Notes: a model not told the origin generated them from the letters alone. DNA of 64,000 nucleotides from Diadema antillarum (GCF_040938485.1 NW_027270924.1:682001-746000); one strand, 5' to 3'. Positions 7,926 through 63,304 are shown, numbered from the stretch's first letter. Translations and numbers: made by a program.

Positions 7926-7997
7926 ATGGGTTATTCTAATAAATTAACTGAAGAAGAAGAGATGCTGCAGAAGAAATTTGCCAAGCTTCGAAAGAAG
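7926..7997 (+). CDS. NELFE: NELFE coding exon 1 (MGYSNKLTEEEEMLQKKFAKLRKK)
   Basis: gccATGg start context; donor AAG|gtaaaa; phase 0. Confidence 0.9.
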
Positions 7998-10900
7998 GTA
8001 AAAACTGTGTGGTCCCACACTATTATATCGCTGTAAAGTGTACTGACTAGTACCGTGTAGTTCGTGGTAAATAATAATAGATAGGTCTAGTCTACTAACA
8101 GTTACATTTATGCATTTGTGCATGACATCTAAAAGTATGGTCTGTCTAGTTCAAAAATCAATGCCTGGAATTTCTCCTTTGACTTTGACATTTCCTGTAG
8201 GGCCAGATTGTGATTATAGTTTGATAATAGTCATTTTAATTTTAATTTTGTATCTTTAAAATACTTTCATTTAATTTTCTATCTAGAACTATTTTATCTA
8301 GACCATAGTCTAGAGTTCTAGTATCTTAGTTTAGTTGTTACAACACTGAATATCTTCTGCCAATCAGGTGGTTATGAATCATTCATGAGAAAAGAGATGT
8401 GTTAAGATTGCTCATTTGACTTTTACTCCAGAAAAAGGCAATACAGCAGCTGAGGCAAAGTAAATCCAACCCACAAACTCCAACAACTCCCCAACCCACA
8501 GCAACTAAAAGAGGTAAGTATGAATTTATTGAAAGGGGTAATGAAGAGGTATTATTAAGAGGAATGGTTAAATGAATGAATGAATGAATGAGGTAAGTGT
8601 TGCCACTAAAGTAAAAATCTATAAAGATTTTGTGTAGGCTGTAATCATTTTTGCTTGCAGGCTGATTAAATTTCAGTTCTAAAGATGTGAAAGCTCCCTT
8701 GTGTCCTGGTGTGTGGGAAGGGAATGGACTGTATTAGTACAGCACAGGGAAGATGCACATGGCAAAAAAGAGGTGACAGATACCACAAATTCAGCCAGTC
8801 ACACTGTCTGAATATTCATTTTTTCTTACTTTATGACTGAAAATTTTCTTGTAGTTCCCCAAATAGAAACTAGTACATACCAGATCATTGTATCAATTCT
8901 TAAAGTACAAAAGCTCCACACCTTTCCCCCTTGTCTTGGCCTTGGTCCATCTCCATAGACTTCATAATATATACAGTGAAGATGCACATGTGGAAAAAGA
9001 GGTGACAGATATTACAACTTTGCCATTTGCAATACCCTGGAATATTAATTTTTCTTACTTTTTGTTGAAAATTTTTCCAAACATTTCCCCCAAAAGTGTG
9101 CATTTAAATATAGATCGTTGAGTTTTAGTTTTAAGAATGCATAATCTCCCTCATATAGGAGGGTGATACCCCCTCACACACCTTCTCCCTGCTCAGTTGC
9201 TTCACTCACTCACTGGANNNNNNNNNNNNNNNNNNNNNNNNNNNNNNNNNNNNNNNNNNNNNNNNNNNNNNNNNNNNNNNNNNNNNNNNNNNNNNNNNNN
9301 NNNNNNNNNNNNNNNNNNNNNNNNNNNNNNNNNNNNNNNNNNNNNNNNNNNNNNNNNTGAACATAATTATTCTTGTTCCCTTAGAAAAATATTCCTGCAT
9401 ATGGTCATGTCTGTGACTTATACAAATTTAGCTAATGCTGTCCTACATTCTGAATGAGAACATGTTTATAAATAACTGGTCTTGAATTGTTACAACTAAG
9501 TGAAAATTGACCGATGTCTAAATAATCTAGCACTCTCATCAATTGGGTGGTGAGTTGGCTCAGTCGGTAGCGCATCTGCCGCACGATCCAAAGGACCCGG
9601 GTTTGAACCTGAGTCTGGACTGAGCAATGTTTTGTGTAATCATACCGTCCCCTCTGGCAAGAGGCAAAACACTCTGTCCCTCGGATAGGACATAAAATGG
9701 AGGTCCCTTGTGTGAGAGAGTCACAACTCATGCATGTAAAAGATCCCGCTCCATTCATTCATCGCAAAGAGCAGGGTGTTTAACCCGGTGAAGTGGACCT
9801 GCCTCACATTCAACTGGACCCCATGGAAGACCAGCTTTGCATAGCTGAATACGGGCTTTCCAGCCATCTTCTCAGATGGAAAAATGAACAAACAAAATTG
9901 ATAATCATTGAAATGGGACCTGTAAGTAAACTGAAATGCAGCTTACTTCTCAAATTTTTTATTTTTCCTGGTCTGTTGCTTTGCTTCCATGGCTCTAGAT
10001 TCTATTGCTTTCGCAAATCAAAATGTTTGCATGTGTCACATGAAGGTTGACTGTAAAATGGTTGTTTCTTAATGCTAGTTTCAAATGAAGAGTAAAAGAG
10101 TATAGTATGGTATCCAAAGAAAGAGAGACAATTTAGGAGGATATTTACGACAATTATGTCTTGTTACTCTAATTTCTGCAGATAAGAACAAACTTTGTAA
10201 CTCAAAGAACGAATTTATCATTTTGCAGACTGAGCCCTCTCAGATGTTGCACTATGTTTGTGGAATCAGTTCTGTGTTCGTATCTGTTCCATGCAAACAT
10301 TGGATTCTTTCAAAGCTAACCTGAAAAACAGTCCTTTTCACAAAAGCATACACCACACAGCTGACACAAGTTTGTAATTGTCTGTAGCATATTGCATTAG
10401 TTCTCCTTGTCCTCCTATTTCATAATGTGCCTCAGAATAATTTAACTATGGGTAGATGGTGCAGTAGAGATGCCTATTTTTGTTATGATTATGATTTTTA
10501 TCTTGTGTGTGTGTGTTTATTTGTGTCTTGGAAATGTCATCTGAAAATTTTGTTTCCCTTTTCCCGTCCCTTTCTCAACAGCTGCTGAAACAAGCAAAGA
10601 GGATGCCAGGGAATTGGCTAAAAAGATCCTTGCTGCCCAGGTATGTGTTTACTCTTTAAATGCCACTTTAGCACACCTGACTCAGTCAATGGTGTGCAAA
10701 GTTTGCGTATTTTGCTCAATCACTCAAACCTGCCCGTTTAAAACCTATCAGTAAATTGCAAAATGCTGCATTACAATGGAAGCCTCACTTGTGATTCTCT
10801 TCCTCTCACTTGCAGCTTGCATTGAGTGGTGATTGAATATCAAATGGCGTTTCCTATTGGATTTGTGAGTAAATTCTGAATTTCTGCCCCTGTTTTGTGT

Positions 10901-13900
10901 GCCTGAAGGATTATAGCAGCTACTGGTAATTTCAAAGAAAGATACTGTGTAAGCTGTTATTTTTTTTTGCGAGGGTTTAATTTTCGCGAATTTTGCGAAT
11001 CTCAGTTGGATCGTGAATTTTACAACATGCTCAAATGTCTCCTTGCACTTTGTTATAATAGAGCATTAACGTAAGTGTCGGTGTCGATTCGGGAAAACAA
11101 TATCTCGCAAAAATGTCTATGACCTCGTCATTGGCGAAAATATCTGTACGCGAAAATAACAGCATATACAGTGAACATAGATTTGTCATAAAGTTTACAT
11201 CATATCAAAGCTTGGCATTTTCTCTACAACTTTGCTCTTTGCATGTCCAGGTAACAAAAATCTATAAAAAGTTACATAGATCTGAAAAACCAAAGCATGC
11301 CTATGATGCAGTCTTAAAATAATGTGGCACACAGGGGGTTTACACTGTGGCGCATAAAGAGTTGATTCTCGAGAAATGTGAAGTGTGTGATCAAATCAAA
11401 TCAAGTTTGAAGTTGGAATACCTGAGTAAAAAGAAGACTTCATGCAGAACCATTTATCAACAGGATCATGTGGTTATCCCCGACTATTAATGCAATTTCA
11501 AAATGCATGTGAGCTGTAGTATCAAATGTTTGCACATAGGAATTGATTTTGGGATGCATTTGTAGTACTTTTCAGCTTGTTGATGATGAGAAATCTCTGT
11601 TCATTAAAATTATTCATCTTATTGGAATAAAAACAAATTATACACAATGTACAAACCAAGGAACTATGCATTTTTATTGTTCTCAATCAGCAAGCAAAGC
11701 AGACAAAGCAAGAAAATAAAGAAAAAGGCTTCAAGAGATCTCGCAATCTTGAAAAGAGGCTTCGTGATCCAGACAAGTCCAGTGGAGCTCCAGCATATCA
11801 ACCTTTCAATGCCTCGGGGTCAAGTCCTCGGGGGTCAGATGACCATTCCTCTTCATCAGGGGGAGATATGAAGAAACACAAGGGACTATATGACAGGTAA
11901 AAAAATAGAAAAGTCCTGCTATTACCATGAAATATCACCTCAATGAATTTTTCTTCAGTTTGAACGTGTGTGTGTTTTCCACTTTTTAAATTTAGTTTTC
12001 ATTATTATTATTATTTTTTGTTTACTGCAGTTTCATAGGATGGAGCAGCTGGTCGTTATTTGGTGTGCGAAAAATAGTATACAAATAATGAATGTTTGTG
12101 AGTGCAATGGACAGAATATTTCATGGGGTGAAAGATGAAATGATCCATTCAACGAGGCGCAGCCAAGTTGAATGGATCAAACATTTCATCTTTGACCAAA
12201 TAAAATATTCTGTCCATTTCACAAATGAAAAACATTTATTATTTGTTCTATATAACGCCTAAAATGGATCCTTGTCATTTGACGTATTATTGATTTAGAA
12301 ACAAGAGAGAATCTGAGCGCTTTCCGCTATCGCGCTGTAGCATACACACTGCAAACGCAAGTGTTTTACACGCGTAGTGTGCCGGGCTCTCAGCGAGCGT
12401 GCAATGGATCGTATGGATCCAAAATTGCACGGTTAATGGAGCCACAATTGCACGGATGATGACGTCATAGTGAAATGGACCGAATGATCAATGTCAAACA
12501 ACCAATCAAATGACAAGGAACTCTTCAGGCGTTATATAATAGGTGATTAAGATTTCCAGATTCACCTTTGATGCTTAAGTGCTTACTGTTTGAAAGGATA
12601 TGGTGATTTGATGATTTTATGCAGTCACACCCAAGTGTGACTGCTTCTTGTTATTAAAGCAGTCTGATCTTTTGTTAGTTAGTTTGAATAGTAAGTTAGT
12701 TAGTTTATTTGTGTGTTTGTTTGTTGTTGTTGTTGTTGTTGTTGGGTGTTTTTTTTTTTTTTGGGGGGGGGGGAGGGGCTGTACAGCACACTGTGTTAAA
12801 TATTTCAAATCAATCAGATGAGATCCTGCTGGAGTAGACATTCATGTTGTAGTTGTCTATGCCTTTGATAGTGAATTTCCTTCCTGCTTTCCCAACTAAG
12901 AATTTACTTTGATATCACATGCTCACATTTAGAAGCCGTCACCTGCAAGCACTCACAATTGCAAGCAGCTTTTATTGAAAGATGCCATTAGATGGTAGAA
13001 TGACAGTTACCCAGATTTTGCCTGAACCACCCTCTGGTTTGGCGTTGAAAATGAAGGAAATCACTCCTATAAACCACTTGATATTTTGTTTCACTGCCAT
13101 GGCATTTTACAGTTTTCTGAAAATTAAGATCAAAGTTTTGCTGTTAACCCTGAATATGGGATGATAATACCCATTTAATACCACACAATCTGTTATTATC
13201 AAGTTTAGATAAGCCCTTTTTTTGTCATAAGACTCCCATATATTTTCACAAACCACAGCTGTTTATCTAAAAGATTGGGTGCTCTGAAATTTTATTCACA
13301 GATGTATTATTCTATTGGATAATACAGACACATTTGCTATTTTTCCGGTTATTCTCACACAGATTTGTCAGCAAAGGGACGTTGGAAGATGAAAAGCGAG
13401 AATCCAGTGAGTTATCTAATAGATATGTGACACACTTGTAGTGAGTAAAAGATAATAAGATTTTTATTGTAGGTAACTCCTCAAGACCAAGGTCCATCCT
13501 TTGTAAAAAAAAAATTCAGTTTACAGTCTATGTTGCAGTTATCATGTAACCCAAGAACTTGTCATTATGATCAAACCGGGATGTGCGGTTGTACATATTA
13601 TTCTGTGTATCTGTTGATGTATACCAAAGAATGATATGGACATTTTAAATGAAGCAAAATTAGATGATCAGCAGGAACTTTTCACCATTGTTATCTTCTT
13701 GAGGGTGTAGGGCAATTACCCCCTGGGTAATTAACTCGGACACTTTGACCGTAACCCTAATCCTAATCCTGAACCTAATCCTGACCTTAAGCCAAATTCT
13801 AACCCTAATTTTTACTCTAACCTTATCACTACTGGGGGGGGGGGGGGGGGGGAGTGGTTATTGCCCTGATATGCTTCTTGCATCTGCAATCCTGTGAGGG

Positions 13901-15976
13901 ACATCCTAACTTGGCAAATACTCATATTCTGTGTCTTTATCTGTAGCAATGTGAAGAATTTTCAGTCTATCAATCCTTGAGGAACTGAACTCTTTGTTTT
14001 TCTTACACATTTAATTCCTATATTCTATGTTTGCATGGCTGTTCTGTTATTTTTCTATTGCAATGTATATAATATGATGTCAGTTATTGGATTAATGAAT
14101 AATGGCAATAAGGATACAGAATGTGGTAAAAGTTTATGGAATAGATGCCAACTGCTGCATTATTCATGAGTATTCAATCGTGTTCACTTTCCTCACAGAT
14201 CAAGAGACGTCATTCAGCGGAAGGCGGCGAGGAAACACAATATATGTCTACTGTCCAAAGATCAACCAAGAACTGTGCAAGGAAACGTTCTCAAAGTTTG
14301 GCTCCATCGCAAACATCTCCCTGGAACCGGACAGAAAGTACAAGACTAACTGCTACGAAAAATGTTCTAAAAGTTTAAATCATATTTATGAAATTGTTTC
14401 ACTCTGATTTCGTGTAATGAGATTCCCCCCTCCCCACTGCCTGCCACAAAAGTTGGATGTTTTTAGCGATATGTCGACAAATTGAAGTCTGTCTCTCAAG
14501 ATGGGACCATCTGATACAAGTCTAAAAGATAGAATGCATGTAGCTATGTTTCCATGTGCCCTATGGTGGTCATTATAGATGGATTATTGTTGACCACAGT
14601 GAGGTATCAACACTTTAGATCATTTACACTGGAATTTTACTGGTACTCCGTTAAGAAAAAAAATCTTCCTTGAATCAAATCAGAAGTAAACCTCCTTTCA
14701 CTCTGAATGTTTGAATTCATATGATGTCATGTTTTGTGAGAAAAACTCGTGCAATTAGACATTTTTTTTTGGGGGGGGGGTAGGCTAATAACGCTGGTCA
14801 TAAGAAGTAGTATTAGTGCAATGCAATTTTTTTTTCGAACTACAATGTATGTAAGTATTTGACTATTGCGTTATCCATTTCTGATGTAATTTTGTCAAAA
14901 GATCTGTGTAGTTCAATATTTCAAGCATATGTTTCTAAGCTAGTTGCCAGTGATGTAACCACCCAATGTAAATGCATTTGCTTCATGGCTGCTATTCATG
15001 ATCCTCCGTTTTCTTTCCAGCTGCGCCTTTATCACGTTTGACGCACTGGATGCGGCGGACAGCGCCATCGAAGCGATGAACGGCAATATGGTGAAGGGCA
15101 TGACGCTGAAGGTAGCTCTTGCCCGGAGACAGCCCTCCCTGGAGGCCGTCCAGAACAACACCAACTCTCCCTGGACAAAACTGGGTGAGAACACACTGGC
15201 AAATGGCATATAATTCAAATTTGACCATGCATCACAAACTGGCAAAACGTTGCCCGACTTGATTTTATTGGAGGACTCAAAAAAAGGTGAAAGGGTCAAC
15301 CCAGGCAATCTTTAGTTTTTCATATTTTCTGAAAGAGCTACGTGTACATGTATTCTTTTTCTACATAATTTGTAGGTTTTAGGATAATAAAATGAATAGG
15401 AAAGCATGTTTTTAGCAGGTTGTTTTTAGAACACTTCTTTGTAGAATAGTGTCACTAGATATGTCTTAGAGGCCCCTTTTCATTTCTTTAGAAATTTCTG
15501 TAAACATCTTTTACGTGGTCTTCACTTTCAACTCTAAAAACGTTTGAAAGGATAATGCTACTGCTTTGAAAGTTGGCGTTAAGCATGGACAAAATGTGGT
15601 TATAGAGCATGCTTAATTTCAGCCTAATCTAATAATCCCTTCATTGTCGTCCCTCCACCCCCACCCCCGCTCTATCATCTACCGAATATAGGGATAAGCC
15701 TAGTTACCCTTCCTTTCCAGTATGTCTTAATGACTCTTATGCTAAGAACACATCATACTTTCGATTTTCATTTTATCATTTGATGGTCAGCAGATGTGTT
15801 TATTTTTTTTAATATCCCTGTCATGTTTGAAGTGAAGAAATCACTCATATGAATCAGTAAATTTTGTATTAAATTCTGTTGTTTTGTAATTTTTCCCCCT
15901 TCCAGCTGGTGGCATAACCAAGACGAGACACAAGGACCAGAGGGAAGTTGTAGTATACGACAACACATTTGAATAG
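7926..15976 (+). CDS. NELFE: Negative elongation factor E (NELF-E), 278 aa, spliced: join(7926..7997,8432..8513,10582..10640,11691..11896,13363..13406,14199..14337,15021..15184,15906..15976)
   Basis: All introns are GT-AG with consistent phases; 837 nt ending in TAG. The N-terminus MGYSNKLTEEEEMLQKKFAKLRKKKKA resembles human LSEEEEALQKKFNKLKKKKKA. Other matches: GFKRSRNLEKRLRDPDK, KGLYDRFVS, RRM GNTIYVY...FSKFGSIANISLEPDRNCAFITFD...AIEAMNG...LKVALARRQP, and C-terminal HKDQREVVVY. Confidence 0.93.
8432..8513 (+). CDS. NELFE: NELFE coding exon 2 (KKAIQQLRQSKSNPQTPTTPQPTATKR)
   Basis: Acceptor ttttactccag; donor G|gtaagt; phase 0 to 1. Confidence 0.88.
9218..9357. other. Assembly gap (140 N)
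   Basis: N run. Confidence 1.
9545..9897 (+). mobile_element. tRNA-derived SINE with Deu domain (DeuSINE family) in NELFE intron 2
   Basis: A box TGGCTCAGTCGG and B box GGTTTGAACC; central TCGGATAGGACATAAAATGGAGGTCCC…GTAAAAGATCCC…AAGAGCAGGG…CCCGGTG resembles the recalled Deu-domain consensus; (AAC/AAAC)-like tail. Confidence 0.8.
10582..10640 (+). CDS. NELFE: NELFE coding exon 3 (AAETSKEDARELAKKILAAQ)
   Basis: Acceptor tttctcaacag; donor CAG|gtatgt; corresponds to human ATEQAKQLVKSG. Confidence 0.85.
11691..11896 (+). CDS. NELFE: NELFE coding exon 4 (…GFKRSRNLEKRLRDPDK…KGLYD)
   Basis: Acceptor ttctcaatcag; donor AG|gtaaaa; conserved GFKRSR motif. Confidence 0.92.
12079..12538. repeat. Interspersed repeat built from two adjacent inverted repeats
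   Basis: ~170-bp imperfect hairpin centred on TTCAACGAGGCGCAGCCAAGTTGAA, then IR TATATAACGCCT…AGGCGTTATATA. Confidence 0.6.
13363..13406 (+). CDS. NELFE: NELFE coding exon 5 (RFVSKGTLEDEKRES)
   Basis: Acceptor ttctcacacag; donor A|gtgagt; the only candidate I found that bridges phase 2 to phase 1 and gives LYDRFVS (human LYESFVS). Confidence 0.8.
13709..13867. repeat. Small IR-bounded repeat with degenerate telomere-like (TAACCC/TAATCC) hexamers and a poly-G tract
   Basis: AGGGCAAT…ATTGCCCT ends; hexamers at about 13752..13825. Confidence 0.55.
14199..14337 (+). CDS. NELFE: NELFE coding exon 6 (RRM N-terminal half)
   Basis: Acceptor ttcctcacag; RRGNTIYVY; donor AA|gtacaa; lies within ORF 14102..14407. 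Confidence 0.92.
15021..15184 (+). CDS. NELFE: NELFE coding exon 7 (RRM C-terminal half)
   Basis: Acceptor ttctttccag; CAFITFD…AIEAMNG…KVALARRQP; donor G|gtgaga. Confidence 0.93.
15906..15976 (+). CDS. NELFE: NELFE terminal coding exon (AGGITKTRHKDQREVVVYDNTFE*)
   Basis: Acceptor ttttcccccttccag; resembles human HRDKRTQIVY; stop TAG at 15974-15976. Confidence 0.88.
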
Positions 15977-17759
15977 ATGCATATTGGACTGGCTGTAAAG
16001 GCAAGCTGGTGTTATGAAGCTGAAAATTCAACTCATCATGCCAGAAAGTCACTTCAGATTTGTGACAAAAAAAAAAATTGCTTAAGCAGGCTTCAGGCAC
16101 AATCTCACTGTAAACTATAGAGATATACGGATGTTTAGCCTTTCCATTTACACTGCAGTGAAAAATTGTGGAGTTTAAGAAAAAAAGACAAGTTCTTGCC
16201 GCCACTGTGACATAAGAGCATAATTGGCTGGGCCGTTTATTGCATGCAAATGGCGGATCCAAGCACCCAAGAGGAAGTATTGTTACAAAGTTTATTATGT
16301 TTTTGTGTTGAACATTCTCAATGCAAACTGTCACCGTGAATTTAACGTCAAAATGACACTCCAGTCTTTGACTTTTTGGGTGACATAATTCTTCACTATC
16401 AGTGTGAATGGCTCACTCTTAATGGCAACCATGTACACCATGAAAGCCATCTTTAAATCACAACTGGAATGAAAAGCAGCCATGAAAATCTACCAGCATT
16501 GGAACCATTGCATCGGCGAGCCAACTTTGAGGGCCCACTGTGTGTAAAGCCATTTTGGAACAGGATTCACCTGTTTTGATACTAACATGGAATGCCAGAC
16601 TTATGCAAACCGCTGTGGACTCAACACCACGTGTCAAACAAGAAGTGATGTACGCCATCTGTACAACATTGTGGACACGAAGCCATCTACGAAAAGATCT
16701 TCACTCTTTGTTGAATCGGTTGCAAGAAGGAGAACCCTTGGTTTAAAGTGTGGCCTGCGAACCATCATTCACAAATTACTTGTACCATTGAAATTTGAGC
16801 CACCATTAATCCATTAAGGACAAGTCCCGAGTATGACCAGGCAGGTGTCTATGGGAAATGCTTGTCGTAGCAAACTCAACCTGTCCCTCAACGGGTTGAT
16901 ATTGTAGTTATGTACAATGTGTTTGGTCAGCTGCTTTTCTTGGTTGGCAATGGGAAGTGGCAGTTATTCCTCTGCGTACTCATTTTCCTCTCTTTTTTGA
17001 GCTAGATCAGCTGTGTTTTATGATTCAACTGAAATCATACATTTTTCCAGAGAGGTGCATCAATGAGACTGGATTTAGAAGGAGTTATTACACCCTATCA
17101 CATCCTACAAGAAACCTAAGATGTCTGTGTCTTACTCAAAGCAATTTTAAAGTAGAATCTATCACCGCTGAAACCCCAGTGCCTAACCAACTTAGGCAAT
17201 TATTCTATCTATGCGAGGTCAACTTCAGCGAGGTTGACCGCATGTGCCGAAGACATGTACAAATATTTATTCCAGTAGCTGTGAATGCACACATGGGTAT
17301 GTTGAAAACATACAAATTATGAAGTGACTCCTTTATTTTCTGAGGAATGATTTTAAACCTTTGTTGTTTCTGGGGTTTTTTTTCAAATAGATAATCAGTG
17401 TCGAGTGACTTCACATTTTTTAATTTAAATTTAATTTTTTTTCTCTATATCTGTGGTGCATTGTATTCTTTGAAAGATTATGGCAAAAGGAAAATTAGCA
17501 AAATTGTTTGTGGCAGTTCACCATGATTATGTTGGCAACATTAAGCCTGTTCTTAAGTCTTACTGCAAATTCAGTGTTGATTATCATTATGTTTTCTTGT
17601 AATTTGATTTCTAAATTTTGTGAATAAAATGTAACCTATGTATAAACAAATGAATTACCAAGTTGCTACCTTTGTTTACCATTAATATTTCATTTATTTG
17701 CAGTCTGTCATCCAGATTGTGTGTATACTTGCAGTGCACAAAACAACAATTTGATTCTT

Positions 17760-17903
17760 NNNNNNNNNNNNNNNNNNNNNNNNNNNNNNNNNNNNNNNNN
17801 NNNNNNNNNNNNNNNNNNNNNNNNNNNNNNNNNNNNNNNNNNNNNNNNNNNNNNNNNNNNNNNNNNNNNNNNNNNNNNNNNNNNNNNNNNNNNNNNNNNN
17901 NNN
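17760..17903. other. Assembly gap (144 N)
   Basis: N run. Confidence 1.
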
Positions 17904-18678
17904 TTTTATTTTTGGTGGCCCGATCGGGCCACCAAAATCATTGATTTTTATTTTTTTGGTGGCCCGAAAAAAAAATCAAGAAAAACATAAGAAAAACTAA
18001 ATTGGTCCTACTAAAGAGAAAAATAAATATTAGAGAAAAATAAATATTAAATATTACTGAAGTGATACAGGTACCCTTGTCTAAAATAAATGAATAGAAA
18101 ATTCAATCATCTTACCGTTATTCTGAGTTCTAAGATTTTGCAAATGGGCTTATAGATTATTATAAAAGTTGATGCCTATTTAGGTGGTCAAAACTTAGGT
18201 TTGAAATGAGAAAGTGGGAGCATTTGCAGACATTTGTAAACATCCGACATTTGTTTTAACATTGTAAAGAGCCGAAAGTTACCGTTATTCATTTCTGATT
18301 TCCGAATGTCAAAGCAAACATTCGACATTTATTCGGCATCTTCCGGAGCTGAATGTTATCCTTGTTCATTTCCGAACGTGAAATCAAATATCTGACATTA
18401 ATTTTAGCACCGTACGGAGGTGAATCGTACCGTTATTCATTTCCAAAAGAATACATGTATAAGCAAACATCCGACATTTATTTTAGTATCATATGGAGTC
18501 AAATATTACCGTTATTCATTTCCAAACTTAAAAGCAAACATCTGACATTTATTTTAGCATCTTGCAGAGCCGATTGTTACCGCTGTACATTTCCAAAAGT
18601 AAAGGCAAACATCAGACTTTTTTTGGGGCCCGACGTGCGTTTTTGGTGGCCCTGGGCCACCGTTAGTGTCGAGCCCTG
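17904..18678. mobile_element. hAT-like element, right part (left end in N gap), with five ~74-bp internal tandem repeats
   Basis: Ends TGTCGAGCCCTG; GGTGGCCC/GGGCCACC motifs; repeat unit ttaccgttattcatttc…caaacatccgacatt starting at about 18279, 18355, 18428, 18506 and 18576. Confidence 0.6.
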
Positions 18679-19036
18679 TATATAGATAGATAGAGAGATT
18701 AATATTCCTCTACTTGCAAGAGCAGCATTTTCTTGCTTCTAGCTGCCCTGGGAGGTTTTATTTTACCCCTTCTGTTTCATCATCCACTCCCCCCCCCCCC
18801 CCCCCCCCCTGTGTTTCATTATGCAATATCTGGGAAGTTTTGACATCTACTAATGGCATTTCAACCATTGCGATGGAATATTCCGTATTTCCTTCCCCTT
18901 TATACTGTATTGGGCTCCACTTCCACAGAGGGTACTTACCTTGGGGTTTTAGTCGAACAATGGGATTGCCTAGTCAGAAAAAATGAACAGCAGACTGACC
19001 ATGAAAACAGTGACATAATGTGACAGATTTCACTTA

Positions 19037-19625
19037 CAGTGCACTCCCGTTACAACGAACATGGTTATAATGAAATTTCGTTATAACGAAGTAAAACTTC
19101 TGGTCCCAAAATTATCGCCATTAAAGTCTATGGTACAAAATTCGCTTATAACGAACACGGTTATAGCGAAGTTTTCATTATAACGAAGTCTTTTTTGAGC
19201 GCCACTGACAAAGAAAAACAAAAGAAATGTGCTCCGTTACAACGAACTGAGGATCATTTTTGAAAATACACTGTGTACGTAGTGGAACAAGCATTTATAG
19301 CGTCTCTGCATGGGCGAACGCGTCACATCACTGTGCGTTCGCTTGGTGTGTCACGCACAGTTTCCGAGGGGAACTTGCGTTATTGTAATACAATAATCTG
19401 AAATTGAATAACTATTTGTTTTATTGTTCACATAGCTTTTCAGTGTATGACGAGTATACAACAAACAGAATATCATATATGCTTGGCTTCCTTGTTTTCG
19501 TTATATATTGTATTTGTTCGGTTATAACGAAATTTCGTTATAACCGAAAAAAAACCCCGAAACCGAAACCGAAAAAAAAAGAAAACTGCCGGTCCCGAGC
19601 AATTCGTTTTAACGGGAGTGCACTG
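19037..19625. mobile_element. Tc1/mariner-pogo (Tigger-like) MITE
   Basis: TIR CAGTGCACTCCCGTT / AACGGGAGTGCACTG flanked by TA; repeated CGTTATAACG motifs. Confidence 0.85.
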
Positions 19626-20817
19626 TATACAGTATGTAATATTGATAAAATACACCTAACTTTTCTTGAAAATGTACTACAGACTGTACTGTATATTTCT
19701 ATTGGTTGATTAAGTTAATCTATATATACCATTGATCAAGCAAACTATCAAAGTGGTAGAGGTCATAAAAAAAAAAAAAAAATGCTGAAGACCATGTTCA
19801 CTAAAATATGCCAACACAGATACAAGTTTGAGAGACTAGTTCACTGTGTATGCAATGTTCATGACCAGCACAAATAAACATACACACAGGTCCAGTCTAT
19901 TTTTCTTTTCTGTTTTCAGCTGTTCGCTTGCATAATTTCTTTATACATGTATATGATGCTTCATTTTATGTTATCAAGAACCCCCCTCCAAAAAAACAAC
20001 AACAAACAAACAACCTAGATATACTGTATCTTCTCTCTCACTGGCATCTTGCAAGTATACTTAGCTCTTTACTAAAGAGCTGGTATCTTTGTTTACTTTT
20101 CGACCTTTGACCTCTTCACATAACCTTTTCAAATCTCTGACTCTCCTCGCTTTTCACCTATGACCAAAAAGAAAAGACAAAGCAAATATTTAGCATGGTA
20201 AATATCTTTTATTCCAAGCATTGGCATCTCTTGGTCAGTATGGGCCTCTAGCCAACCGACTGATTTGAAAAACCTGTGTCACACATTCAGAACATACTCG
20301 TCTGAATTCGTTCTCACCCGATACAGCACATATGCGTGTTCTCACCTTAAACTGAGAATCCACAACCATCTCGTGAGTACAAATACATACATCACAGCTT
20401 GCCCCAAGAATTAATTACAGGAGCATCCTACCAATCTGAAGGAACATTCAAATACTAATTCACAATTCAAAGCAACAAAACAATACATTTTTCAGAAACT
20501 GCGTAACCAAGCATGGAAGGTTTTTGTTTGTTTGTTCTTTTAAATCTCTCCTGTTTTCTTTCTTGTTGGTCATATACAACTATCAGTGATTTAGAGTTTC
20601 CAGAAATTATAATAATCGGTCCTTAATATTGAATTACGTAAAGTAAATGGCGGGCAGTTTATCATTGACGTTGACATATTCCCAAGGAAAGAATAAAGAT
20701 TGTGCAAAGTGGTAGGAAGAGAGCGAACAACAGGATATGTTGTAGATACACTGTACTTGTCTCGTACAAAGTCTTCATGCATAAAACATCAATGTGTGGC
20801 AGTAGATTATAGGGTCA

Positions 20818-20958
20818 NNNNNNNNNNNNNNNNNNNNNNNNNNNNNNNNNNNNNNNNNNNNNNNNNNNNNNNNNNNNNNNNNNNNNNNNNNNNNNNNNNN
20901 NNNNNNNNNNNNNNNNNNNNNNNNNNNNNNNNNNNNNNNNNNNNNNNNNNNNNNNNNN
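20818..20958. other. Assembly gap (141 N)
   Basis: N run. Confidence 1.
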
Positions 20959-51900: not shown

Positions 51901-53497
51901 ACTTGTGACAAAACATACAATCACAATCTTTACTTGATTGTTTTGAGCACTCTCAATCTGGCTTCAAATGATTTCATAAATGTTTCTCCCCATTTGTCAG
52001 GTCAATTGCTAAGTAAAATTATTTTGACCTCTTTGTCATCGTCAATCTTTATACCCTCTTTTTTTTTTCAAGGAAATTTCATCTAATGGAGGTGTATCTT
52101 TCTAGCACTGCATTGCAAAAATGTGTGTATAACCAGGCAATAGCTGATGTACATTGTATATTTGTGTTTTGTGTGGTTTTTTTTTATGTCTACAGTATAT
52201 GTGGTACGCTGCATTCTGTGGATCAGTTCCTTAACATCAAGCTGACGGACATCTCTGTGGTCGACCAAGACAGGTATCCACACATGGTAAGTTGTCTCTT
52301 TGACCTCTGACCCTTGACACGCAGAGGGATAGCGCAGTTGTTTGTCCAGAGAGCACTTCAGTGATGAATCAGTTCCTTTCAAATCACATGCACCTCAACA
52401 GACCAAAGTCACACACTTTCAAGTGGAAAAGAAGTGCGAGGAAAATAGAAAGGGAAATTGCGCAATGATGTAAAAATCTAAAGCTGGTTAAAAGTTGATC
52501 GACCACCAACTTTTTTTTAGGAGTTTAATCACTATAAAACCCACATTATTAAAATCTGATGATCCTTGCAGTTTCAGTATTGTAAAAATATAGCCTTTTG
52601 AATATACATTTAAAAATTTTGAGCAGATTTTAGTCTGGATTTAATGGATCTGAAAAAAAACCTGTCGCCAAGCACATTTAAGGTGAATTGAGCATACAAG
52701 CCAATTCTCAAACCTTCTGCACAATGTAGACAACATTTTTTGTGTGTCAATAGTTTTGGCTGCTGTATTTATTTTTCTGCAAAAGAGGGCATTAAGAAAG
52801 TCTTTTTAGGAAAACAAAGAATGTTATACCACTGTAAGGTCTGTAACACATTTGACAGTAATGGAAGTTTGAATATGCCTAGTTCCTGCAAAGTATGGAC
52901 AAAAACAGTGTGAATCAGTATGGCATGGTATGGTTGGGTGAATATTGAGGGACTCGTGCTTAGATGGTATCATTCCCTTTCTATGATTTGTGCACCTAAA
53001 GTGGCAACTGGCTGGAATGCTCCCCAGGAAGTAAAGAGTGAGCACTGTTGGTACTGAGTGGAAGTAATGTAGGCATATCCAGTGTTCAGGATGATAATAA
53101 GAGTATGCATGTGCCTTGAGCACTCTACAGAGTGGATTTGGTGCAATATAAGTCATTATTCTTCTTCTTATTATTCTTATTCTTATTCTTATTCTTATTG
53201 TTATTGTCGTTGTTGTTGTTGTTTTTGTTGTTATCATCATCATCATTATTATTATCATTTATTCATTCACTGAGAGAAAACTTTGTGTACCCTCTGATTC
53301 AGCATTGTCAAAATGTACATTTCCTTTTTTACTGGCCTGTGTACATAATTTCTTGCACAATTTGTTTACAGCTGTCAGTCAAGAACTGCTTCATAAGGGG
53401 CTCGGTGGTTAGGTATGTTCAGTTGCCGGCGGACGAGTGCGACACACAGCTTTTACAGGATGCCGCTCGGAAGGAGGCCTCTCAGAGCAAACAGTGA
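48966..53497 (+). CDS. LSM2: U6 snRNA-associated Sm-like protein LSm2, 95 aa: join(48966..48968,51302..51369,52196..52286,53372..53497)
   Basis: Spliced product MLFYSFFKSLVGKDVVVELKNDLSICGTLHSVDQFLNIKLTDISVVDQDRYPHMLSVKNCFIRGSVVRYVQLPADECDTQLLQDAARKEASQSKQ*; canonical GT-AG; first coding exon is ATG only (ATG|gtaagt). Confidence 0.96.
49206..49383. mobile_element. hAT-like MITE (178 bp) in LSM2 intron 1
   Basis: Perfect 13-bp TIR CAGGGCTGCCAAC / GTTGGCAGCCCTG; 6-bp TSD CTGTCC (49200-49205, 49384-49389). Confidence 0.8.
49483..50243. mobile_element. Tc1/mariner-like non-autonomous element in LSM2 intron 1
   Basis: Imperfect TIR CAGAGTGACC…GTCCCGTCATTTTGAAGTTG versus CAACTTCAAAATGATGGGAC…CTGACTCACCCT; TA flanks. 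Confidence 0.7.
51302..51369 (+). CDS. LSM2: LSM2 exon 2 (LFYSFFKSLVGKDVVVELKNDL)
   Basis: Acceptor ttcactgcag; donor AG|gtatgt. Confidence 0.96.
52196..52286 (+). CDS. LSM2: LSM2 exon 3 (SICGTLHSVDQFLNIKLTDISVVDQDRYPHM)
   Basis: Acceptor tatgtctacag; donor ATG|gtaagt. Confidence 0.96.
53156..53256. repeat. Compound simple repeat (TTC/TTATTC/GTT/ATC/ATT)
   Basis: Direct reading. Confidence 0.9.
53372..53497 (+). CDS. LSM2: LSM2 terminal exon (LSVKNCFIRGSVVRYVQLP…SKQ*)
   Basis: Acceptor ttgtttacag; stop TGA. Confidence 0.96.
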   Translation: MSVKNCFIRGSVVRYVQLPADECDTQLLQDAARKEASQSKQ

Positions 53498-54309
53498 CCT
53501 CCTTGAGACAAGACTATTGACTCAGAGACGCTGATCATGAAAACAGTGATGTCATACCCTGTGTGTATGGATGCTGTGTGATGCATTATGAGAGATGCAG
53601 ACTGTGCATTAAGGAAGCCAGGAGCGAGCCAAAACGTGGGAAGAGAAACACACTGGAGGATCTTTCATGTATTTTTCTCTTTTCCTTTCATCAAGTTTTT
53701 ACTATTCTCTGTACATATTGGTGGATCACTGATACAAGAACGGGAAATGTTATGTTTGTGCAAAGTAGAAATTGACAACATAGCAAGCATGATTTCAAGT
53801 CATCCAGTACTCAGGTATTCTGCAACAGAAATCTCACTCCAGAGTTACCTGCATTACACTTTATCTTACTGTGGTGTTCTATATACAGTGGTTAGCATGA
53901 TCACTTTATATGGATAACGAAGAAAAAGAAAAAAAGGAACAAGGTCTATATAAAGACCAAAAGACATAACCTTTGCAAAATACACACCTTGGTTGATAAT
54001 TCATCAGCTACAAATGTTTGGAATACAGTAGCTCCGTTGTGTTCATTTGTTGTTGTTGGGGTTTTTTTTAATAAAATGGGGGGTTTTATAGCAAAATGTA
54101 GTCCTGAATGAGAATTTGAGTCCACATGAAGTCAAAGGGGGTTTGTGACTGATCCAAATGTCAAGGAAAAAGTAGTCTCTTGATAGGAGGCTGTGATGCA
54201 CTATGGAGTATGAACCTTTCCTCACATGCAAGGATGCCAACCTTGTAAATATCATTTCAGTATTCCAGCAGCTGAAAAGGCTTTTTTTTTTGGGGGGGGG
54301 GGAACAGTA

Positions 54310-54485
54310 CAGTCAAACTTGCTAAAGTTGACCTCACATAAGTCGAATAATAGCCTAAGTGAAAGGTCTTTTCAAGTCCTCTTCTCTTGATACTATATTG
54401 ATTTTAATCCCGCATAATTGAATTTTCTCTTAAGTCGAAGCTATTTCTTCAGTTCAAATAGATTTGACTTGGGCGAGGTTGACTG
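54310..54485. mobile_element. Tigger-like MITE
   Basis: TA-CAGTCAAACTTGC…GCGAGGTTGACTG-TA. Confidence 0.75.
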
Positions 54486-57400: not shown

Positions 57401-57514
57401 GTGACTGCATTCTTGTCAGGAATGTTACGGGGCTTCTGAGCATTTGGAAATTTCATCCTGCGTGACTTGACATCCAATAATCTTGAAAGGGAAGGGTGCA
57501 CAATCCGCTATGTA

Positions 57515-57629
57515 TTATGATTTTTGGGGGAGAGTGTCCACATCCAGACTTGTGATCTCCAGCGTTTCCTCTTCTGTCAATTCTGAACGTACCTTTTCTC
57601 CCTTCGCTGCCATTATCTCCTCAATGTTC
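57515..57629 (-). CDS. DNLZ: DNLZ terminal exon (NIEEIMAAKGEKV…LPQKS*)
   Basis: Acceptor ctgtcatacag; stop TAA at 57517-57515. Confidence 0.9.
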
Positions 57630-59814
57630 CTGTATGACAGACAGACAAATCCAGAAGATTAAGACAAACAACTGCAGTGCACTCCCATTATAACAAACAC
57701 AGTTATAACCAAAATTTGTTACAGTAAAGTAAAAATTTGGTTTCCAAAAGTGTCATTTAAATATCTTTATATACTTTCTTTGTTTGGCTATAAAGAAATG
57801 TAAATACCATTACAAAAGAAAACTGCTATCTCCAAGGAATTCATTGAAATGCGACTCACCTGTACATCATTCCAACACTTCATGACAATACATGAGAAAT
57901 GAATTCTTTACCAATCATCCCTACAAAACAACTGTTTTTATTTCAACAACTCTATGCAATGTTGAATAATGATGTGGTTAGCATACAATTGAAGAACTAC
58001 ACATAACCAGTGAACCACCTTAATGGGGATCTGACACACACGTTAAAACGACAACATGAAGACACATGCAATCGTTTAGATCATTTATTTGGGCGTCTTA
58101 GTGAAATAATGAAATATGTCTGTATGTCTTTTTGCACTTTGTGTAGGAGAATACAGTGTACTTGTATTTGCAGAATATTCCAGCTCTCGAATTACAGATA
58201 TCTCTGTCAGGTCAGCCTCTGACATTACAGCATTTGAGAGTGAGAACTCTACATTGTAGACATATACATGTATTTACCTTCCTGCCCCCTCAGCTCCCTT
58301 GAACCAATCAAGGTTGTCCGCAATGAGGTGGTTGCTGTCGCATCCGCTGCACCTCACTATGACCACACCCTTTTCATAGGCCTGCTTTGAGATGGAGCGT
58401 GCTGTCCGTGTTCCACACACTTTACAGGTGAAGGCCAGATGGAGCTTTCCTGGAAAGGCATCATCATGTGATTATTAAGCTAGGTGTGCTGTGCAGTGAC
58501 TCCATTTATTCTTCCTAAACTAAACTGAACAAACTCTAATAGAACTGTATAAAAAAGTTCACATCTTACTTGTGTGGTTGTTTAGCTTTTATGTTATCTG
58601 CATAAAATTCATCATGCATTATCCCATGGATGATTTCTCTCGCATTCCATCACTCAAGCAAACACAAAAGGTTAACAAAATGTGAGCGAAGATAGTTGTT
58701 TTTATCTTGCACATAGGAAGGCCTCAAAAGATAGGGAGACAGCTAAACTTTAGCCTATTGAATTGAAGATATCAGATGTGCCCTTGATATGAAAAAGATT
58801 ATCTTCCATCACATCATGAAATCGTCAGTTGGTTTCCATCATGAAAACTGTGACTGGCAATGTCCATTGAAATGCATTCATGGATGGTTAAGACCAACTG
58901 CAAAAGGTACTCAGTATAAAATGTATTAGTTTCCACTTCAAGCAAAAACTTGAATCAGTAAATATTAATTTCATTCATCCAGCCAATGCATTTAAACTGA
59001 TGCCTCTTAAAGGTATCGTATAGTTTTGGTTGCGACCTAATTTCAGGTTTCTAACATTTTTTGGTGAGATCTAATCAGAAACATCTTTTGAAATATGAAA
59101 GAGCATGTAATTCTATGGGGAATTCAACATTAATTTGATGAAAATTGGTTTTGAAATGGCCAAGATATACAAAAAAAAGCGATTCTACTAAAGTGTGGGA
59201 CCCACACTTTATCACAATCGCTTTGTTTTACTTTGTTTTTGGATGTTTCAGTCATTCCAAACCCGATTTTCATCAAATAAACTTTGAATTCCTCTTAAAA
59301 TGGTATGCTCTGTACTATAAAATAAGTGTTTTCTTGATATCTCGCAAAAAGTTAAAAGCCCAATTCTCATCTCCACCAATACTGTACTATCCCTTTAAAG
59401 CGACTTTTCAATGTTTATTCCTATTATACAGACAGGAAAAGCAAACCAGAAATGTGCTTGGTCTGGATTAAGTAGGATACCTTGGATCTTTCCCAATGCT
59501 TGCTTGCCATCCTCACTGCTGCCTTCTCCACTTGAACAAACCCTTGATGGCGCCCTAATATTGACATGTGGTCTGTGTCTTCCCAGCACACAAGAGTCAT
59601 TCTGATGATTACACAGTCCTCCATTCCGTCCTCTCACACAAAGACATGGTGACGATGTAGCTGTCCTGGCTTTGATTTTTGATGATGAAAAAGTTCTAAA
59701 GCCAACAGAAGAACTTGTGGCTCGCACAGGTGGAGTTCTTCCATGGATGTTCCAAAGTGTTCTTGTAAAGAAACGAGCTCCAAGTCTGGTCACTGCACTT
59801 ACAGATTGTGACAT
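57515..59814 (-). CDS. DNLZ: DNL-type zinc finger protein (mitochondrial Hsp70 escort, Hep1/Tim15/Zim17), 206 aa: complement(join(57515..57629,58278..58449,59481..59814))
   Basis: Arg/Ser-rich presequence-like N-terminus with no acidic residues over the first ~70 aa; [56 protein letters not shown] (zf-DNL CxxC…CxxC, ADNL) followed by RNIEEIMAAKGE; in-frame upstream TAA fixes the start; phases consistent. Confidence 0.93.
58278..58449 (-). CDS. DNLZ: DNLZ zinc-finger exon
   Basis: Acceptor cctttccag; donor AG|gtaaat; CKVC…CSGC…IADNL. Confidence 0.95.
59011..59394. mobile_element. Kolobok-like non-autonomous element in a DNLZ intron
   Basis: TTAA flanks (59007-59010, 59395-59398); AGG…CCT termini with imperfect TIR; central palindrome AAAGTGTGGGACCCACACTTT. 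Confidence 0.75.
59481..59814 (-). CDS. DNLZ: DNLZ first coding exon (targeting peptide); exon begins at 59904
   Basis: ORF 59395..59814; donor G|gtatcc; acceptor ttctttttgaag ends at 59905. Confidence 0.85.
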
Positions 59815-60172
59815 TGTGAAGTATTTTGCTTTCCTCTTTTTGAGTGTTACTCCTTCTTTGTATTCATCTGGAATTTTTAAAGTTTAACTCCTCATGATCA
59901 TGTCCTTCAAAAAGAAGAAGAAATGATACATCATCGTTATCACAAAACTACATATGGCATGACATCAATATTCAGTAGACCGATGGTATCTGTCTCTTCA
60001 CAATGGGCTTCTGAACTGACATTTATGGTCAGCCCATCATGTCCCAACATCAGATAAGAAGCCCATCCGGAAGAGACAGATACCATCGGTCTACAAACAT
60101 TGTTCAATTGAGCTTTCACAAAGCAATATCCAGACAAATAGAACAAGTTTGAATACTACGAGAATATCCTAT

Positions 60173-60876
60173 GTGACCCGCTACAACAAAAGGATCCTAA
60201 AGTTGCTGACGGGTGAGTGGAGAAAATCAGTTTGAAGTCAGATGATCAAAATCCGTCAAAACGTTTGGATTTCTGTTTTTGACATAACTTTGTAGTCTAA
60301 TGTATCTTTTATCATCTACGGAAATTTCGAAGCTAAATGATCAAAGGAAAGGCAAGAAAATAGTGTTTTTCTGGGCCATGATTTTCAGACTTTCAACGGA
60401 ACAGAAACGTGTCCGAAGATTTGGATTTAGCGCCGCAGCTAGACTCCACCCCTAGCAACGAGGGAGTGATCTCATTGGTCAGTGCGTGGCATCCTGGTTA
60501 CTGATTGGTTGTGCGTAGACTGCTTGGTTACTGATTGGTTGTGCGTAGACCGCTGGGGCTAAGCTTGAATAAGCATCATGGAGGTTGCTAAAAGCGTACC
60601 TTCTATTGTCACACGGTGAAAACTGTCTTGCTTCCCCTTGATCCTGATACAATCAATAGCATCAAAAGGAAAACTTTGAAGGCGGTTTTCTCGAAACATT
60701 GATTTCCTAAACCACTCCACATGCGCCAATAAATTAATTGATATCCCCGCAACTGAGTACTTTTATGAGTCATGTTATATATGACATTTAAGCGGAAGAG
60801 TAAGGGAATAATGGCATGTCATTTTCAGAAAATTGTCCTCCCCCGACTTTTGGATCCTTTCGTTGCAGCAGGTCAC
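60173..60876. mobile_element. Unclassified TIR element (704 bp) with 4-bp TSD
   Basis: Imperfect ~30-bp TIR GTGACCCGCTACAACAAAAGGATCC / GGATCCTTTCGTTGCAGCAGGTCAC; CTAT on both flanks. Confidence 0.75.
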
Positions 60877-62099
60877 CTATCTCCATCACGCTGATTCATG
60901 GTTCCCCTTTCCCCCGAACACCAGTCTTTTTCTTTAGTCAACCATCTTAATTCTTTCTTCTTTTTTATATTTAAACAGATCTATAGACTGTAGTATAGTA
61001 ATGTATTGTAAATTTGTACTAAGTGAAAAGGAATTCATGATCGGAATGACTAAAAAGTATTCATTAAATGTTATAGGCTTGGCATCTTTCTATTCAAAAC
61101 AAACTGAATGAAGTCACCGAAGTGAATGTTTAACATTAGTGAATTATGACAAGATTTGCTAATGTAGGACAGTTATTTTGTCGTTGCTTACTTTGCTGTA
61201 TATCTTGTATGCCTACTCCCCTTTTGTTGTCTGTCTAGACCTTGTATTAATTTGCATTAGTTTGCTTTTCAGTACTGCCTTGCAGTCTGACATTAATTCA
61301 GTTAAATTAATGATATTCAGTTGTCGCCTCCATGATCATCACTTCACATACCTTTCCTCTTCTTTAGTTTTGTCACCTTCATTCTTTCTCTATTCAGGTA
61401 TGTTCATTCATTCCATCCTACACACGATTCTTGAGTTAAGCCCAGACAGCTCCCACTCTTACGTAATCACCCCATCCTGCTTCCATCATCTCATGCTCTC
61501 CTTTACTTTAATTGGTTGATTTATTGAATTGGACTCTTCTACTTTATTGAAGTCCTCTGTTCCATTTAGTTCCATTGGTTGCTATAGATAATTTGAATAT
61601 ATGTAAATATTGGTTGTGTAAATTATGTTCATGCAGAAGTTTACTAAGGGCGAGTTGCCCTCAGAATAAAGCAGAGCACTACCCAGACTTCATCGACTCC
61701 AGTTCATCTTTTTTTGCTTTCCCGAGTTATCAACATTAAGTTATATTTATCTCCCGTCTTACAAATAGATTTCTGTTAAGTTTACAGGATCAGGATCGAG
61801 AACATTTCTTAATAATTTCACAACATTTACTTTGACACGCTACACTATTCCTTCAATCCTTGTTATCTTTTTAATCTAACACTAACAAAATCTACATCAT
61901 GCGCATTCCAGGCGCAGGCCCACAAGTAGTAGGTAGTGGTAGTGCATCTCATCTCATCTGTAAATTTACTGTTGTCCCACATACTTACATTTGTGTGGGC
62001 AGTGCCTTTAAAGAAAAAAAAATACGTGGTTTTCAGGGGATTTTGTAGCTTCTTTCCGTTTAGCAGACCTCAAATTCAATTTCAAATCAGCTTCGGTAT

Positions 62100-62700
62100 C
62101 CTCTGCAATAGTGTTGCCAGTAAGTTTACAGCAAATCATCTACAGGGAAGTCGCGGCCGCGGCGGTGAGGCGATGGTTTGTTTCACGTTTAAACGAACTC
62201 TTGGATGCGGGGACGCGGACGACGCACGTGAGTGTATGCACGATCATAACATTTTATTACGCAATCCAGTTTAGAATCGACGTGACTCAGTACTCGATCA
62301 GTGTGGCGCAGCGTGCGAGCGCTGAGCGCGCGCATGTTACCGTATCTTATGTGTGTTTGTTGGTGTTCTATCAACTTCTAGCTTCTCATCAGACATCGGC
62401 ATGGCCTTCACACTTACCGAATCCTTGATTATACATAAGGAAGAACTCTTTCTTGGTTAATACAAAAATCACACTTTGCAACATGAATGCATCGTCCGTC
62501 CTGAGTTCTTCGAGAAGTGCAGTTTTACAGCTAAAAAACAAACGATGTTTTGCTGTTCATAAAGCTGTTTGGTTTTTCGGTGTTAGGAGATGTCACGAGC
62601 GTCGGGGGAACGGTAAGTAATTTTAGGCGAAAGGCGAAAGGCAACCCGAGTTGGGTTAAGTTTGTCTGTGGACTGTGGTATTGAATTAAGGTGTGTTTAG
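62100..62700. promoter_or_regulatory. CpG-rich shared DNLZ/COQ4 promoter zone
   Basis: CpG enrichment; minus-strand donor GTAAGT at 62417; COQ4 ATG at 62483. Confidence 0.55.
62483..62612 (+). CDS. COQ4: COQ4 coding exon 1 (mitochondrial targeting peptide)
   Basis: 130 nt, phase 1, donor gtaagt at 62613. Confidence 0.75.
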
Positions 62701-63304
62701 TCTAATTCTATTCTGCTGAAGATAAATCAGTAAATGCAGGGCTGCTGCCAACTGAACTTCCAAGCAGTAATGACTGTAATTTACCTAATTACAAGTTTAC
62801 AACTCGGTGCGGGAAACCTGGTCACGTCATGGGGGAGGGGGGCTCCTCCTATTGAGCGTGGTCGAGGTGCTCATGAGGCCCGTGGAGCGAGATGCCCGTG
62901 ATGAGGCCCCCCTGTCCACTTCTCATCCACCTCACATCTGACATTGTCACAGTTTGCACAGTGATTTTTAGTTACACACATGTCCACTCTCCATGCTGAA
63001 AAGAAGAAAAAAAAAAACATTTGTCTTCGCTTTTGACAAAAATCAAGTTTTCCGTGATGTGCAGCAACCCCACTGAAACAGAACGATAGATGTTGACCTA
63101 TCAACTTTATGCCTTTTTTTAGTTTAGGTTGACAGTGTTCACTGACTTTTGTTGGATTTGCAGATGGCTATCCAGATGAGACAATGGCAAAGCCTAACAT
63201 GGATGGTCTCCTGTATGAACATCACACTCCCACTACAGCCCTGCAGAAGATCCTTCTCACAGCTGGATCTGGTTTTATGTCACTCTACAATCCTTACAGG
63301 CATG
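62483..63304 (+). CDS. COQ4: Ubiquinone biosynthesis protein COQ4, 5' part (gene continues past the window): join(62483..62612,63164..63304)
   Basis: Exon 2 encodes [31 protein letters not shown] (human [32 protein letters not shown]). Exon 1 from ATG 62483 is open ([23 protein letters not shown]…, presequence-like) and phase-compatible; donors G|gtaagt and G|gtaagc. Confidence 0.88.
62805..63075 (+). mobile_element. Diverged left-end copy of the 47134..48070 family in COQ4 intron 1
   Basis: cggtgcgggaaacctg…ctcatgaggccc…ctcacatctgac…acacacatgtccact…gaaaagaagaaaa. Confidence 0.7.
63164..63304 (+). CDS. COQ4: COQ4 coding exon 2
   Basis: Acceptor ggatttgcag; conserved LQK.LL..GS....LYNPYRH. 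Confidence 0.92.

Follow-up and report, generated by a model that had tools for sequence, protein, structure and literature searches.

A five-gene run of the sea urchin Diadema antillarum mapping to the human MHC paralogons probably reflects chromosome-level conservation, with DNLZ-COQ4 as the only pair that looks old

The 64,000-nt stretch of Diadema antillarum DNA analyzed here (hereafter the window, whose base 1 is base 682001 of scaffold JBFRCO010000036.1) carries, as checked exon by exon, the genes NELFE(+), KLHL20(-), LSM2(+), DNLZ(-) and the 5' end of COQ4(+), in that order. A first-pass annotation of the same sequence had read this run as a remnant of the proto-MHC (major histocompatibility complex) chromosome that existed before the two vertebrate genome duplications, and had proposed KLHL20, DNLZ and COQ4 as ancient close neighbors of MHC class III genes. 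Our analysis favors, with a probability of roughly 0.8, the reading that this is an ordinary gene stretch of an urchin chromosome derived from the ancestral linkage group (ALG) that became human 1q23-25, 6p21.3, 9q33-34 and 19p13, and that its local order is a mosaic in which only the DNLZ-COQ4 pair is old. The common origin from one chromosome predating the duplications is already known, and the DNLZ-COQ4 pair is the modestly new result.

Local gene order was compared at the LSM2 or DNLZ orthologue of nine other species, using one gene per species with 10 kb on either side and following the pairs KLHL20-LSM2, LSM2-DNLZ and DNLZ-COQ4 (the crinoid locus was reached through the long DNLZ isoform); absence in this comparison means not within 10 kb, and a gene moved by 15-50 kb counts as absent. 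Among the echinoderms, the order is KLHL(-) LSM2(+) DNLZ(-) DEAD-box helicase(+) in the echinoid Lytechinus variegatus, ZIP(+) LSM2(+) DNLZ(-) in the holothurian Apostichopus japonicus, COQ4(-) DNLZ(+) EF-hand(-) in the crinoid Anneissia japonica, and COQ4(-) DNLZ(+) followed by a zf-MYND gene in the brittle star Amphiura filiformis. The mussel Mytilus coruscus has COQ4(-) DNLZ(+), the clam Mactra antiquata PSMB1(-) LSM2(+) MBF1/EDF1(-), the gastropod record GCA_000002075.2 (presumably Aplysia) MutL-like(-) LSM2(+), and the tick Ixodes scapularis DNLZ(+) BAG6(-), while DNLZ of the coral Stylophora pistillata lies with sulfotransferase/peptidyl-tRNA hydrolase and Pygo-like neighbors and with neither COQ4 nor LSM2. 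Where a locus lacked LSM2 or COQ4, tblastn and tblastx searches brought up no unannotated copy.

DNLZ and COQ4 are adjacent in Diadema, Anneissia and Amphiura, representing three echinoderm classes, and in Mytilus coruscus (Mollusca), which extends the pair over two phyla, and the two genes stand head to head (5'-5') in 4/4 species that have it. The called genes are separated by 134 nt in Mytilus, 190 nt in Amphiura and 1355 nt in Anneissia, and in Diadema 2668 nt lie between the two ATGs. The independent origin of such a divergent arrangement in molluscs and echinoderms has an estimated probability of about 5e-4 for two genes on one chromosome and, since it is this unlikely, the adjacency was probably already present in the common ancestor of protostomes and deuterostomes. 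Lytechinus, Ixodes and vertebrates have lost it, and perhaps Apostichopus too, where only 5.6 kb of upstream sequence is in view. At 23683-24286 of the Lytechinus locus, the head-to-head place that COQ4 takes in Diadema belongs to a DEAD-box helicase of 736 aa that contains a CTE_SPB4 domain, so that DNLZ-COQ4 was broken, or COQ4 was displaced, within the euechinoids.

The two products work in mitochondria, DNLZ as an escort of the organelle's Hsp70 and COQ4 in the biosynthesis of coenzyme Q. At slightly better than even odds, we regard DNLZ-COQ4 as a head-to-head pair of bilaterian age that would be held by selection on a shared bidirectional promoter co-regulating two mitochondrial proteins of the matrix side. 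Under this reading, crinoids, brittle stars, diadematoid urchins and mussels still have the pair, and separate breaks parted the two genes in camarodont urchins, in ticks and in vertebrates, the last with both genes still in 9q34. Among the NRF1, GABP, YY1, CCAAT and CRE motifs looked for in the intergenic regions of the four species with the pair, none was shared, and only Mytilus gave near-matches, of the NRF1 type. Pairs of this kind are known as conserved ancient microsyntenic pairs (CAMPs), which include 5'-5' pairs such as the mitochondrial chaperonins HSPE1-HSPD1 (Irimia et al., 2012, PMC3514665). Like HSPE1-HSPD1, DNLZ and COQ4 are unrelated, divergent and mitochondrial, lie 134-190 nt apart in some species, and have been kept across phyla with repeated loss in some lineages; in contrast to the CAMPs, they are not adjacent in human (9q34.3 versus 9q34.11), their spacer reaches 2.7 kb in Diadema, and their shared promoter and co-expression are presumed. 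Because the two genes are apart in human, surveys anchored on the human genome would miss the pair, and no paper treating DNLZ and COQ4 as a pair was found in the searchable literature, a search that did not extend to the supplementary lists of microsynteny surveys.

The adjacencies that involve class III orthologues have a different distribution. KLHL20-LSM2 was found within 10 kb only in Diadema and Lytechinus, and the tail-to-tail LSM2-DNLZ adjacency only in Diadema, Lytechinus and Apostichopus, both being absent at that distance from Anneissia, Amphiura, Mytilus, Mactra, the gastropod, Ixodes and Stylophora; the class III adjacencies compared therefore reach no further than Echinozoa. Besides, LSM2 has other neighbors in the clam (PSMB1, EDF1) and in the gastropod, and the 3' neighbors of DNLZ differ in crinoid, brittle star, tick and coral. 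The proposal that KLHL20 was an ancient neighbor of class III genes is not supported, given the restriction of KLHL20-LSM2 to echinoids, nor is the same proposal for DNLZ and COQ4, given the restriction of LSM2-DNLZ to echinoids and the holothurian; as DNLZ and COQ4 both map to 9q34, their own pairing is uninformative on class III.

Several of the neighbors found elsewhere deserve a separate mention. In the clam (locus 4390-22679) PSMB1, recognized by a PDB match at E 7e-27, is the head-to-head partner of LSM2 and MBF1/EDF1 its tail-to-tail partner, and in the tick (locus 10001-20955) DNLZ is tail to tail with BAG6, a DNLZ-class III adjacency whose partner is unlike that of the urchin. Human BAG6 lies at 6p21.33, within MHC class III, and human EDF1 at 9q34.3; neighbors from the same human regions fit a conservation at the level of the chromosome and not of local order. 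Upstream of LSM2 in Apostichopus japonicus (locus 1507-4545), the ZIP gene has a histidine-rich N-terminus and a HEVPHEIGDFAIL motif, and its exon had no match in the PDB. It resembles ZIP7/KE4, the product of SLC39A7 in the human MHC class II region, and is a candidate member of that subfamily. A Logan contig bearing DNLZ had unrelated neighbors and was uninformative.

The sequence of events that we favor would begin with a bilaterian ALG that gave rise to human 1q23-25, 6p21.3, 9q33-34 and 19p13 after the two vertebrate genome duplications. The urchin chromosome would have kept this group largely intact, so that neighboring single-copy genes share these human regions, while local order would have been assembled through intrachromosomal shuffling. 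KLHL20-LSM2 would then have arisen or survived within echinoids, and LSM2-DNLZ would be common to echinoids and the holothurian. DNLZ-COQ4, in turn, would most likely owe its persistence to a bidirectional promoter, shared or interdigitated, for two mitochondrial proteins encoded in the nucleus; its breakage in camarodont urchins, ticks and vertebrates would have come later.

The human map positions agree with this scenario and with the first-pass annotation, whose assignment of all five genes to MHC paralogons was confirmed. Human COQ4 lies at 9q34.11 (PMC8826242), DNLZ in subtelomeric 9q (9q34.3) with NOTCH1, CARD9, GPSM1 and SNAPC4 (PMC4766673), KLHL20 at 1q25.1 (PMC6959051), and LSM2 and NELFE in MHC class III at 6p21.33 (PMC13565614), which places 5/5 orthologues inside 1q23.3-1q25.3, 6p21.33-6p21.31 and 9q33.2-9q34.3, the intervals that match one amphioxus chromosome (PMC13012124). 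That chromosome corresponds to human 1, 6, 9 and 19 through 432 genes (PMC13012124), and sea urchins keep the bilaterian ALGs, a few fusions excepted (PMC11175523); five genes out of five are consequently what would be expected anywhere on the homologous urchin chromosome. Under a scrambled genome, with about 1/10 of human genes in the four regions (an estimate), the same result would have a chance of about 1e-5. The scrambled genome is, however, the wrong null for this observation, and known macrosynteny is the relevant one.

It is hardly credible that these are five unrelated genes without any ancestral linkage whose human orthologues fall in these regions by coincidence. NELFE, KLHL20, LSM2, DNLZ and COQ4 are all single-copy in human. 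Nothing specific argues for such a coincidence, although each gene, as a single-copy housekeeping gene without paralogues across the paralogons, is a weak anchor when considered alone; the chance calculated above argues against it, and the clam and tick neighbors also indicate 9q34 and 6p21. Moreover, published chromosome-scale synteny (PMC11175523, PMC13012124) accounts for the pattern and effectively refutes this explanation.

A more serious alternative is that the 56-kb block descends from a compact ancestral proto-MHC core in which NELFE and LSM2 stood beside KLHL20, DNLZ and COQ4 before the duplications. The placement of all five genes in paralogons is consistent with it, as are the order KLHL20-LSM2-DNLZ common to two urchins deeply diverged within the euechinoids, the presence of LSM2-DNLZ in the sea cucumber as well, and the contacts of tick DNLZ with another class III orthologue, BAG6, and of sea cucumber LSM2 with a ZIP gene that looks ZIP7-like. 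We nevertheless consider a compact core unlikely: crinoid and brittle star have DNLZ-COQ4 and no LSM2 within 10 kb, the mussel also has DNLZ-COQ4 without LSM2, LSM2 keeps other company in clam and gastropod, and class III neighbors that differ from phylum to phylum would be expected if genes are ordered at random inside one conserved chromosome. In amphioxus, furthermore, 55 MHC-related orthologues are spread along the whole chromosome, with their order reshuffled between species, and compaction of the MHC has been dated after the cephalochordate-vertebrate split (PMC13012124). The earlier inference of a remnant of the proto-MHC chromosome is thus supported with respect to a common chromosome before the duplications, as the published intervals indicate, and unsupported with respect to a compact block, the amphioxus orthologues being scattered.

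The comparison with amphioxus is instructive in other respects. Its proto-MHC chromosome (Abi-Rached et al., 2002; Asymmetron/Branchiostoma, PMC13012124) resembles the urchin case in uniting on one chromosome orthologues from 1q23-25, 6p21.3, 9q33-34 and 19p13, most of them housekeeping genes without an immune role, and the five urchin genes fall in exactly the same human intervals. The urchin sample differs in covering 56 kb and five single-copy genes without multi-paralogue anchors; ORF (open reading frame) and Pfam scans of the window revealed no member of the classical anchor families NOTCH, RXR, PBX, BRD, tenascin, C3/4/5 or PSMB7/10. Because the amphioxus genes are dispersed along their chromosome, a short urchin run argues poorly for an ancestral compact block. 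The work on echinoderm conservation of the bilaterian ALGs (Simakov et al., 2022; Lin et al., 2024, PMC11175523) describes a combination of conserved chromosome content and free internal shuffling, which explains why successive urchin genes belong to one set of human paralogons; the urchins analyzed in PMC11175523 did not include Diadema, which branches early within the euechinoids. Nakatani et al. have regarded the wider idea of a proto-MHC chromosome as in part a product of later fusions, and the literature searched contained no explicit proto-MHC study of echinoderms.

Some observations weigh against an ordinary stretch of a conserved chromosome with one old pair. The comparison rests on one gene per species and on 10-kb flanks, so that displacements of 15-50 kb are read as absence; its deuterostome loci come from echinoids, a holothurian, a crinoid and a brittle star, a set that does not fix the ancestral order of deuterostomes; and the ALG membership of the genes is drawn from published synteny. 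In addition, the Diadema spacer between DNLZ and COQ4 exceeds the length of a classic bidirectional promoter, no motif shared with the spacers of the other species was found in it, and two class III orthologues one gene apart are closer than two genes drawn at random from a chromosome with about 1000 genes. One near-pair of class III genes is unremarkable, however, when about 50 MHC orthologues share a chromosome of that size. A functional clustering of RNA-processing genes (NELFE, LSM2) and of mitochondrial genes (DNLZ, COQ4) was also considered, and was rejected for the former two, as no adjacency or conservation joins them beyond urchins.

The gene order itself withstood scrutiny, with a reservation for its left end. 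Besides the five genes, the window contains 20 intergenic or intronic ORFs of about 90-200 aa without a Pfam match, and no further cellular gene was found; no tRNA or Rfam match was obtained in the window, and the public annotation calls no additional gene within 39-63.5 kb; the claim of five consecutive genes within 56 kb, all present in the order first given, therefore holds. KLHL20 is likewise the single gene between the class III orthologues NELFE and LSM2, the NELFE side depending on scaffolding. The public locus on scaffold JBFRCO010000036.1 (GCA_040938485.1) is 100% identical to window positions 39079-63497 over 24,419 nt. G+C content ranges from 35 to 46% along the window without sharp breaks and is even across the gaps, which are three runs of N, all outside coding sequence (Table 1).

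No coding exon comes closer than 700 nt to the first gap and no coding frame touches it, and the NELFE exons on its two sides are on the same strand and colinear with human NELFE, so that the join looks correct and the frame unaffected. NELFE and KLHL20 are tail to tail with a spacer of 12 kb, which holds both the second and the third gap, and the adjacency of NELFE to the other four genes consequently rests on scaffolding. NELFE could thus have been joined artificially through the gapped 17.7-21 kb, in which case the class III genes would perhaps not be one gene apart. These two gaps are compatible with such an artefact, as is the fact that the public locus compared spans 39079-63497 only, with NELFE-KLHL20 read from this one assembly; the colinear, same-strand exons around the first gap suggest that joins in this region are sound, composition is uniform across the gaps, and we judge a misjoin distinctly unlikely.

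Gene identities were checked per exon. For NELFE, the exon at 11715-11894 has human NELFE as its sole PDB match (residues 73-125, E 4e-6) and the last two exons form an RRM with a NELFE RRM match at E 1.6e-8, which means that the N-terminal NELF-interaction region and the C-terminal RRM are both present; an RD-repeat region was not identified among the exons recognized. The exon boundaries of this gene are approximate, extra small exons may exist between 11.9 and 14.2 kb, and its 3' end is an assumed stop. The kelch gene sides with KLHL20, as the first-pass annotation had named it. Its kelch exons have human KLHL20 as best natural PDB match, in colinear order (one exon giving a 115.7-bit domain, chain residues 179-249), with total scores at least 70 bits above those of KLHL17, KLHL2, KLHL3 and KEAP1, and exon 1 shares 77-89% identity with proteins that bear the name KLHL20 or diablo, against 54% for KLHL2, the first hit outside that family, all as pairwise identities. 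The public KLHL20 model has 587 aa.

In LSM2, the last conserved exon matches human LSM2 at 37/40 residues, and the public model has two more exons on the 5' side (49079-49180, 49549-49611) that would give a 51-aa N-terminal extension; these two exons (49079-49611), which have no counterpart in other LSM2 proteins, are probably 5' untranslated region. For DNLZ, the public model is labeled partial, with 112 aa, and a full presequence exon with its ATG at 59814 exists, which shows 76% identity with the protein of Diadema setosum. The public annotation looks flawed in both cases, owing to the partial call in DNLZ and the N-terminal extension in LSM2. COQ4 is represented by its 5' part, and the in-window match to the Pfam family Coq4 (PF05019) is borderline, covering profile positions 1-30 only and scoring 22.8 bits where the cut-off is 22.9. 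A public gene model starting at this site has a 283-aa product with PF05019, and the exon matches the crinoid and mussel COQ4 loci in tblastx (E 2e-9 and 2e-7); compared with the PDB, it had no relative.

Table 1. Genes, intergenic region, assembly gaps and retroelement in the window (positions counted from window base 1).
Feature	Position	Strand	Basis and coding exons, or context
NELFE	7926-15213	+	Homology; ATG 7926, stop 15211-15213; exons 7926-7997, 8432-8512, 10575-10640, 11715-11894, 14222-14338, 15022-15210
KLHL20 (Drosophila diablo orthologue)	27497-42088	-	BTB, BACK and Kelch Pfam matches on separate exons; eight coding exons, approximately 41558-42088, 40804-40962, 39956-40165, 39069-39257, 37630-37773, 35532-35663, 28812-29021, 27500-27688; stop at 27497
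LSM2	49079-53497	+	Conserved coding exons 51302-51367, 52194-52292, 53372-53494
DNLZ (HEP1/ZIM17 family)	57515-59814	-	zf-DNL Pfam match, E 2e-25; tblastn with the 206-aa Diadema setosum protein; exons 59428-59814 (presequence), 58268-58456 (zf-DNL), 57518-57631
COQ4, 5' part only	62483-63303	+	Exon 1 62483-62563 (presequence), exon 2 about 63208-63303; gene runs beyond
Divergent DNLZ-COQ4 intergenic region	59815-62482		Sequence separating the ATGs; promoters presumed to be shared or adjacent
Assembly gap 1	9218-9357		NELFE intron, between exons 8432-8512 and 10575-10640
Assembly gap 2	17760-17903		NELFE-KLHL20 intergenic; nearest coding sequence is the NELFE end at about 15.2 kb; surrounding ORFs without Pfam match
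Assembly gap 3	20818-20958		NELFE-KLHL20 intergenic; 6.5 kb from the KLHL20 stop
Ty3/gypsy-type LTR (long terminal repeat) retroelement	29697-35466	+	KLHL20 intron, antisense to KLHL20

Repeats are found in and around several of these genes. The Ty3/gypsy-type element in KLHL20 has an uninterrupted ORF of 1395 aa (30003-34190) encoding gag, protease, reverse transcriptase, RNaseH and integrase, and only 65 nt separate its right end and the KLHL20 exon at 35532-35663. Its terminal direct repeats (29697-29819 and 35344-35466) are 123 nt long and 100% identical, which suggests from the sequence that the insertion may be recent. The KLHL20-LSM2 spacer holds at 45473-46614 a tandem array with a period of about 310-340 nt, whose copies are about 83-85% identical as judged from staggered self-matches. 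A dispersed repeat family occurs upstream of KLHL20 (42227-42753), upstream of LSM2 (47133-48071) and in COQ4 intron 1 (62870-63080), with copies 74-93% identical and in both orientations.

Taken together, the locus is a clean and checkable example of class III 'passenger' genes placed with 1q25 and 9q34 genes on one chromosome that predates the duplications, and it adds little to published synteny. As the class III adjacencies compared are young, it is unfit to be cited as evidence of an ancestral compact MHC-like cluster. DNLZ-COQ4, on the other hand, is a candidate for the small set of deeply conserved bidirectional mitochondrial pairs and a handy microsynteny marker within this linkage group.

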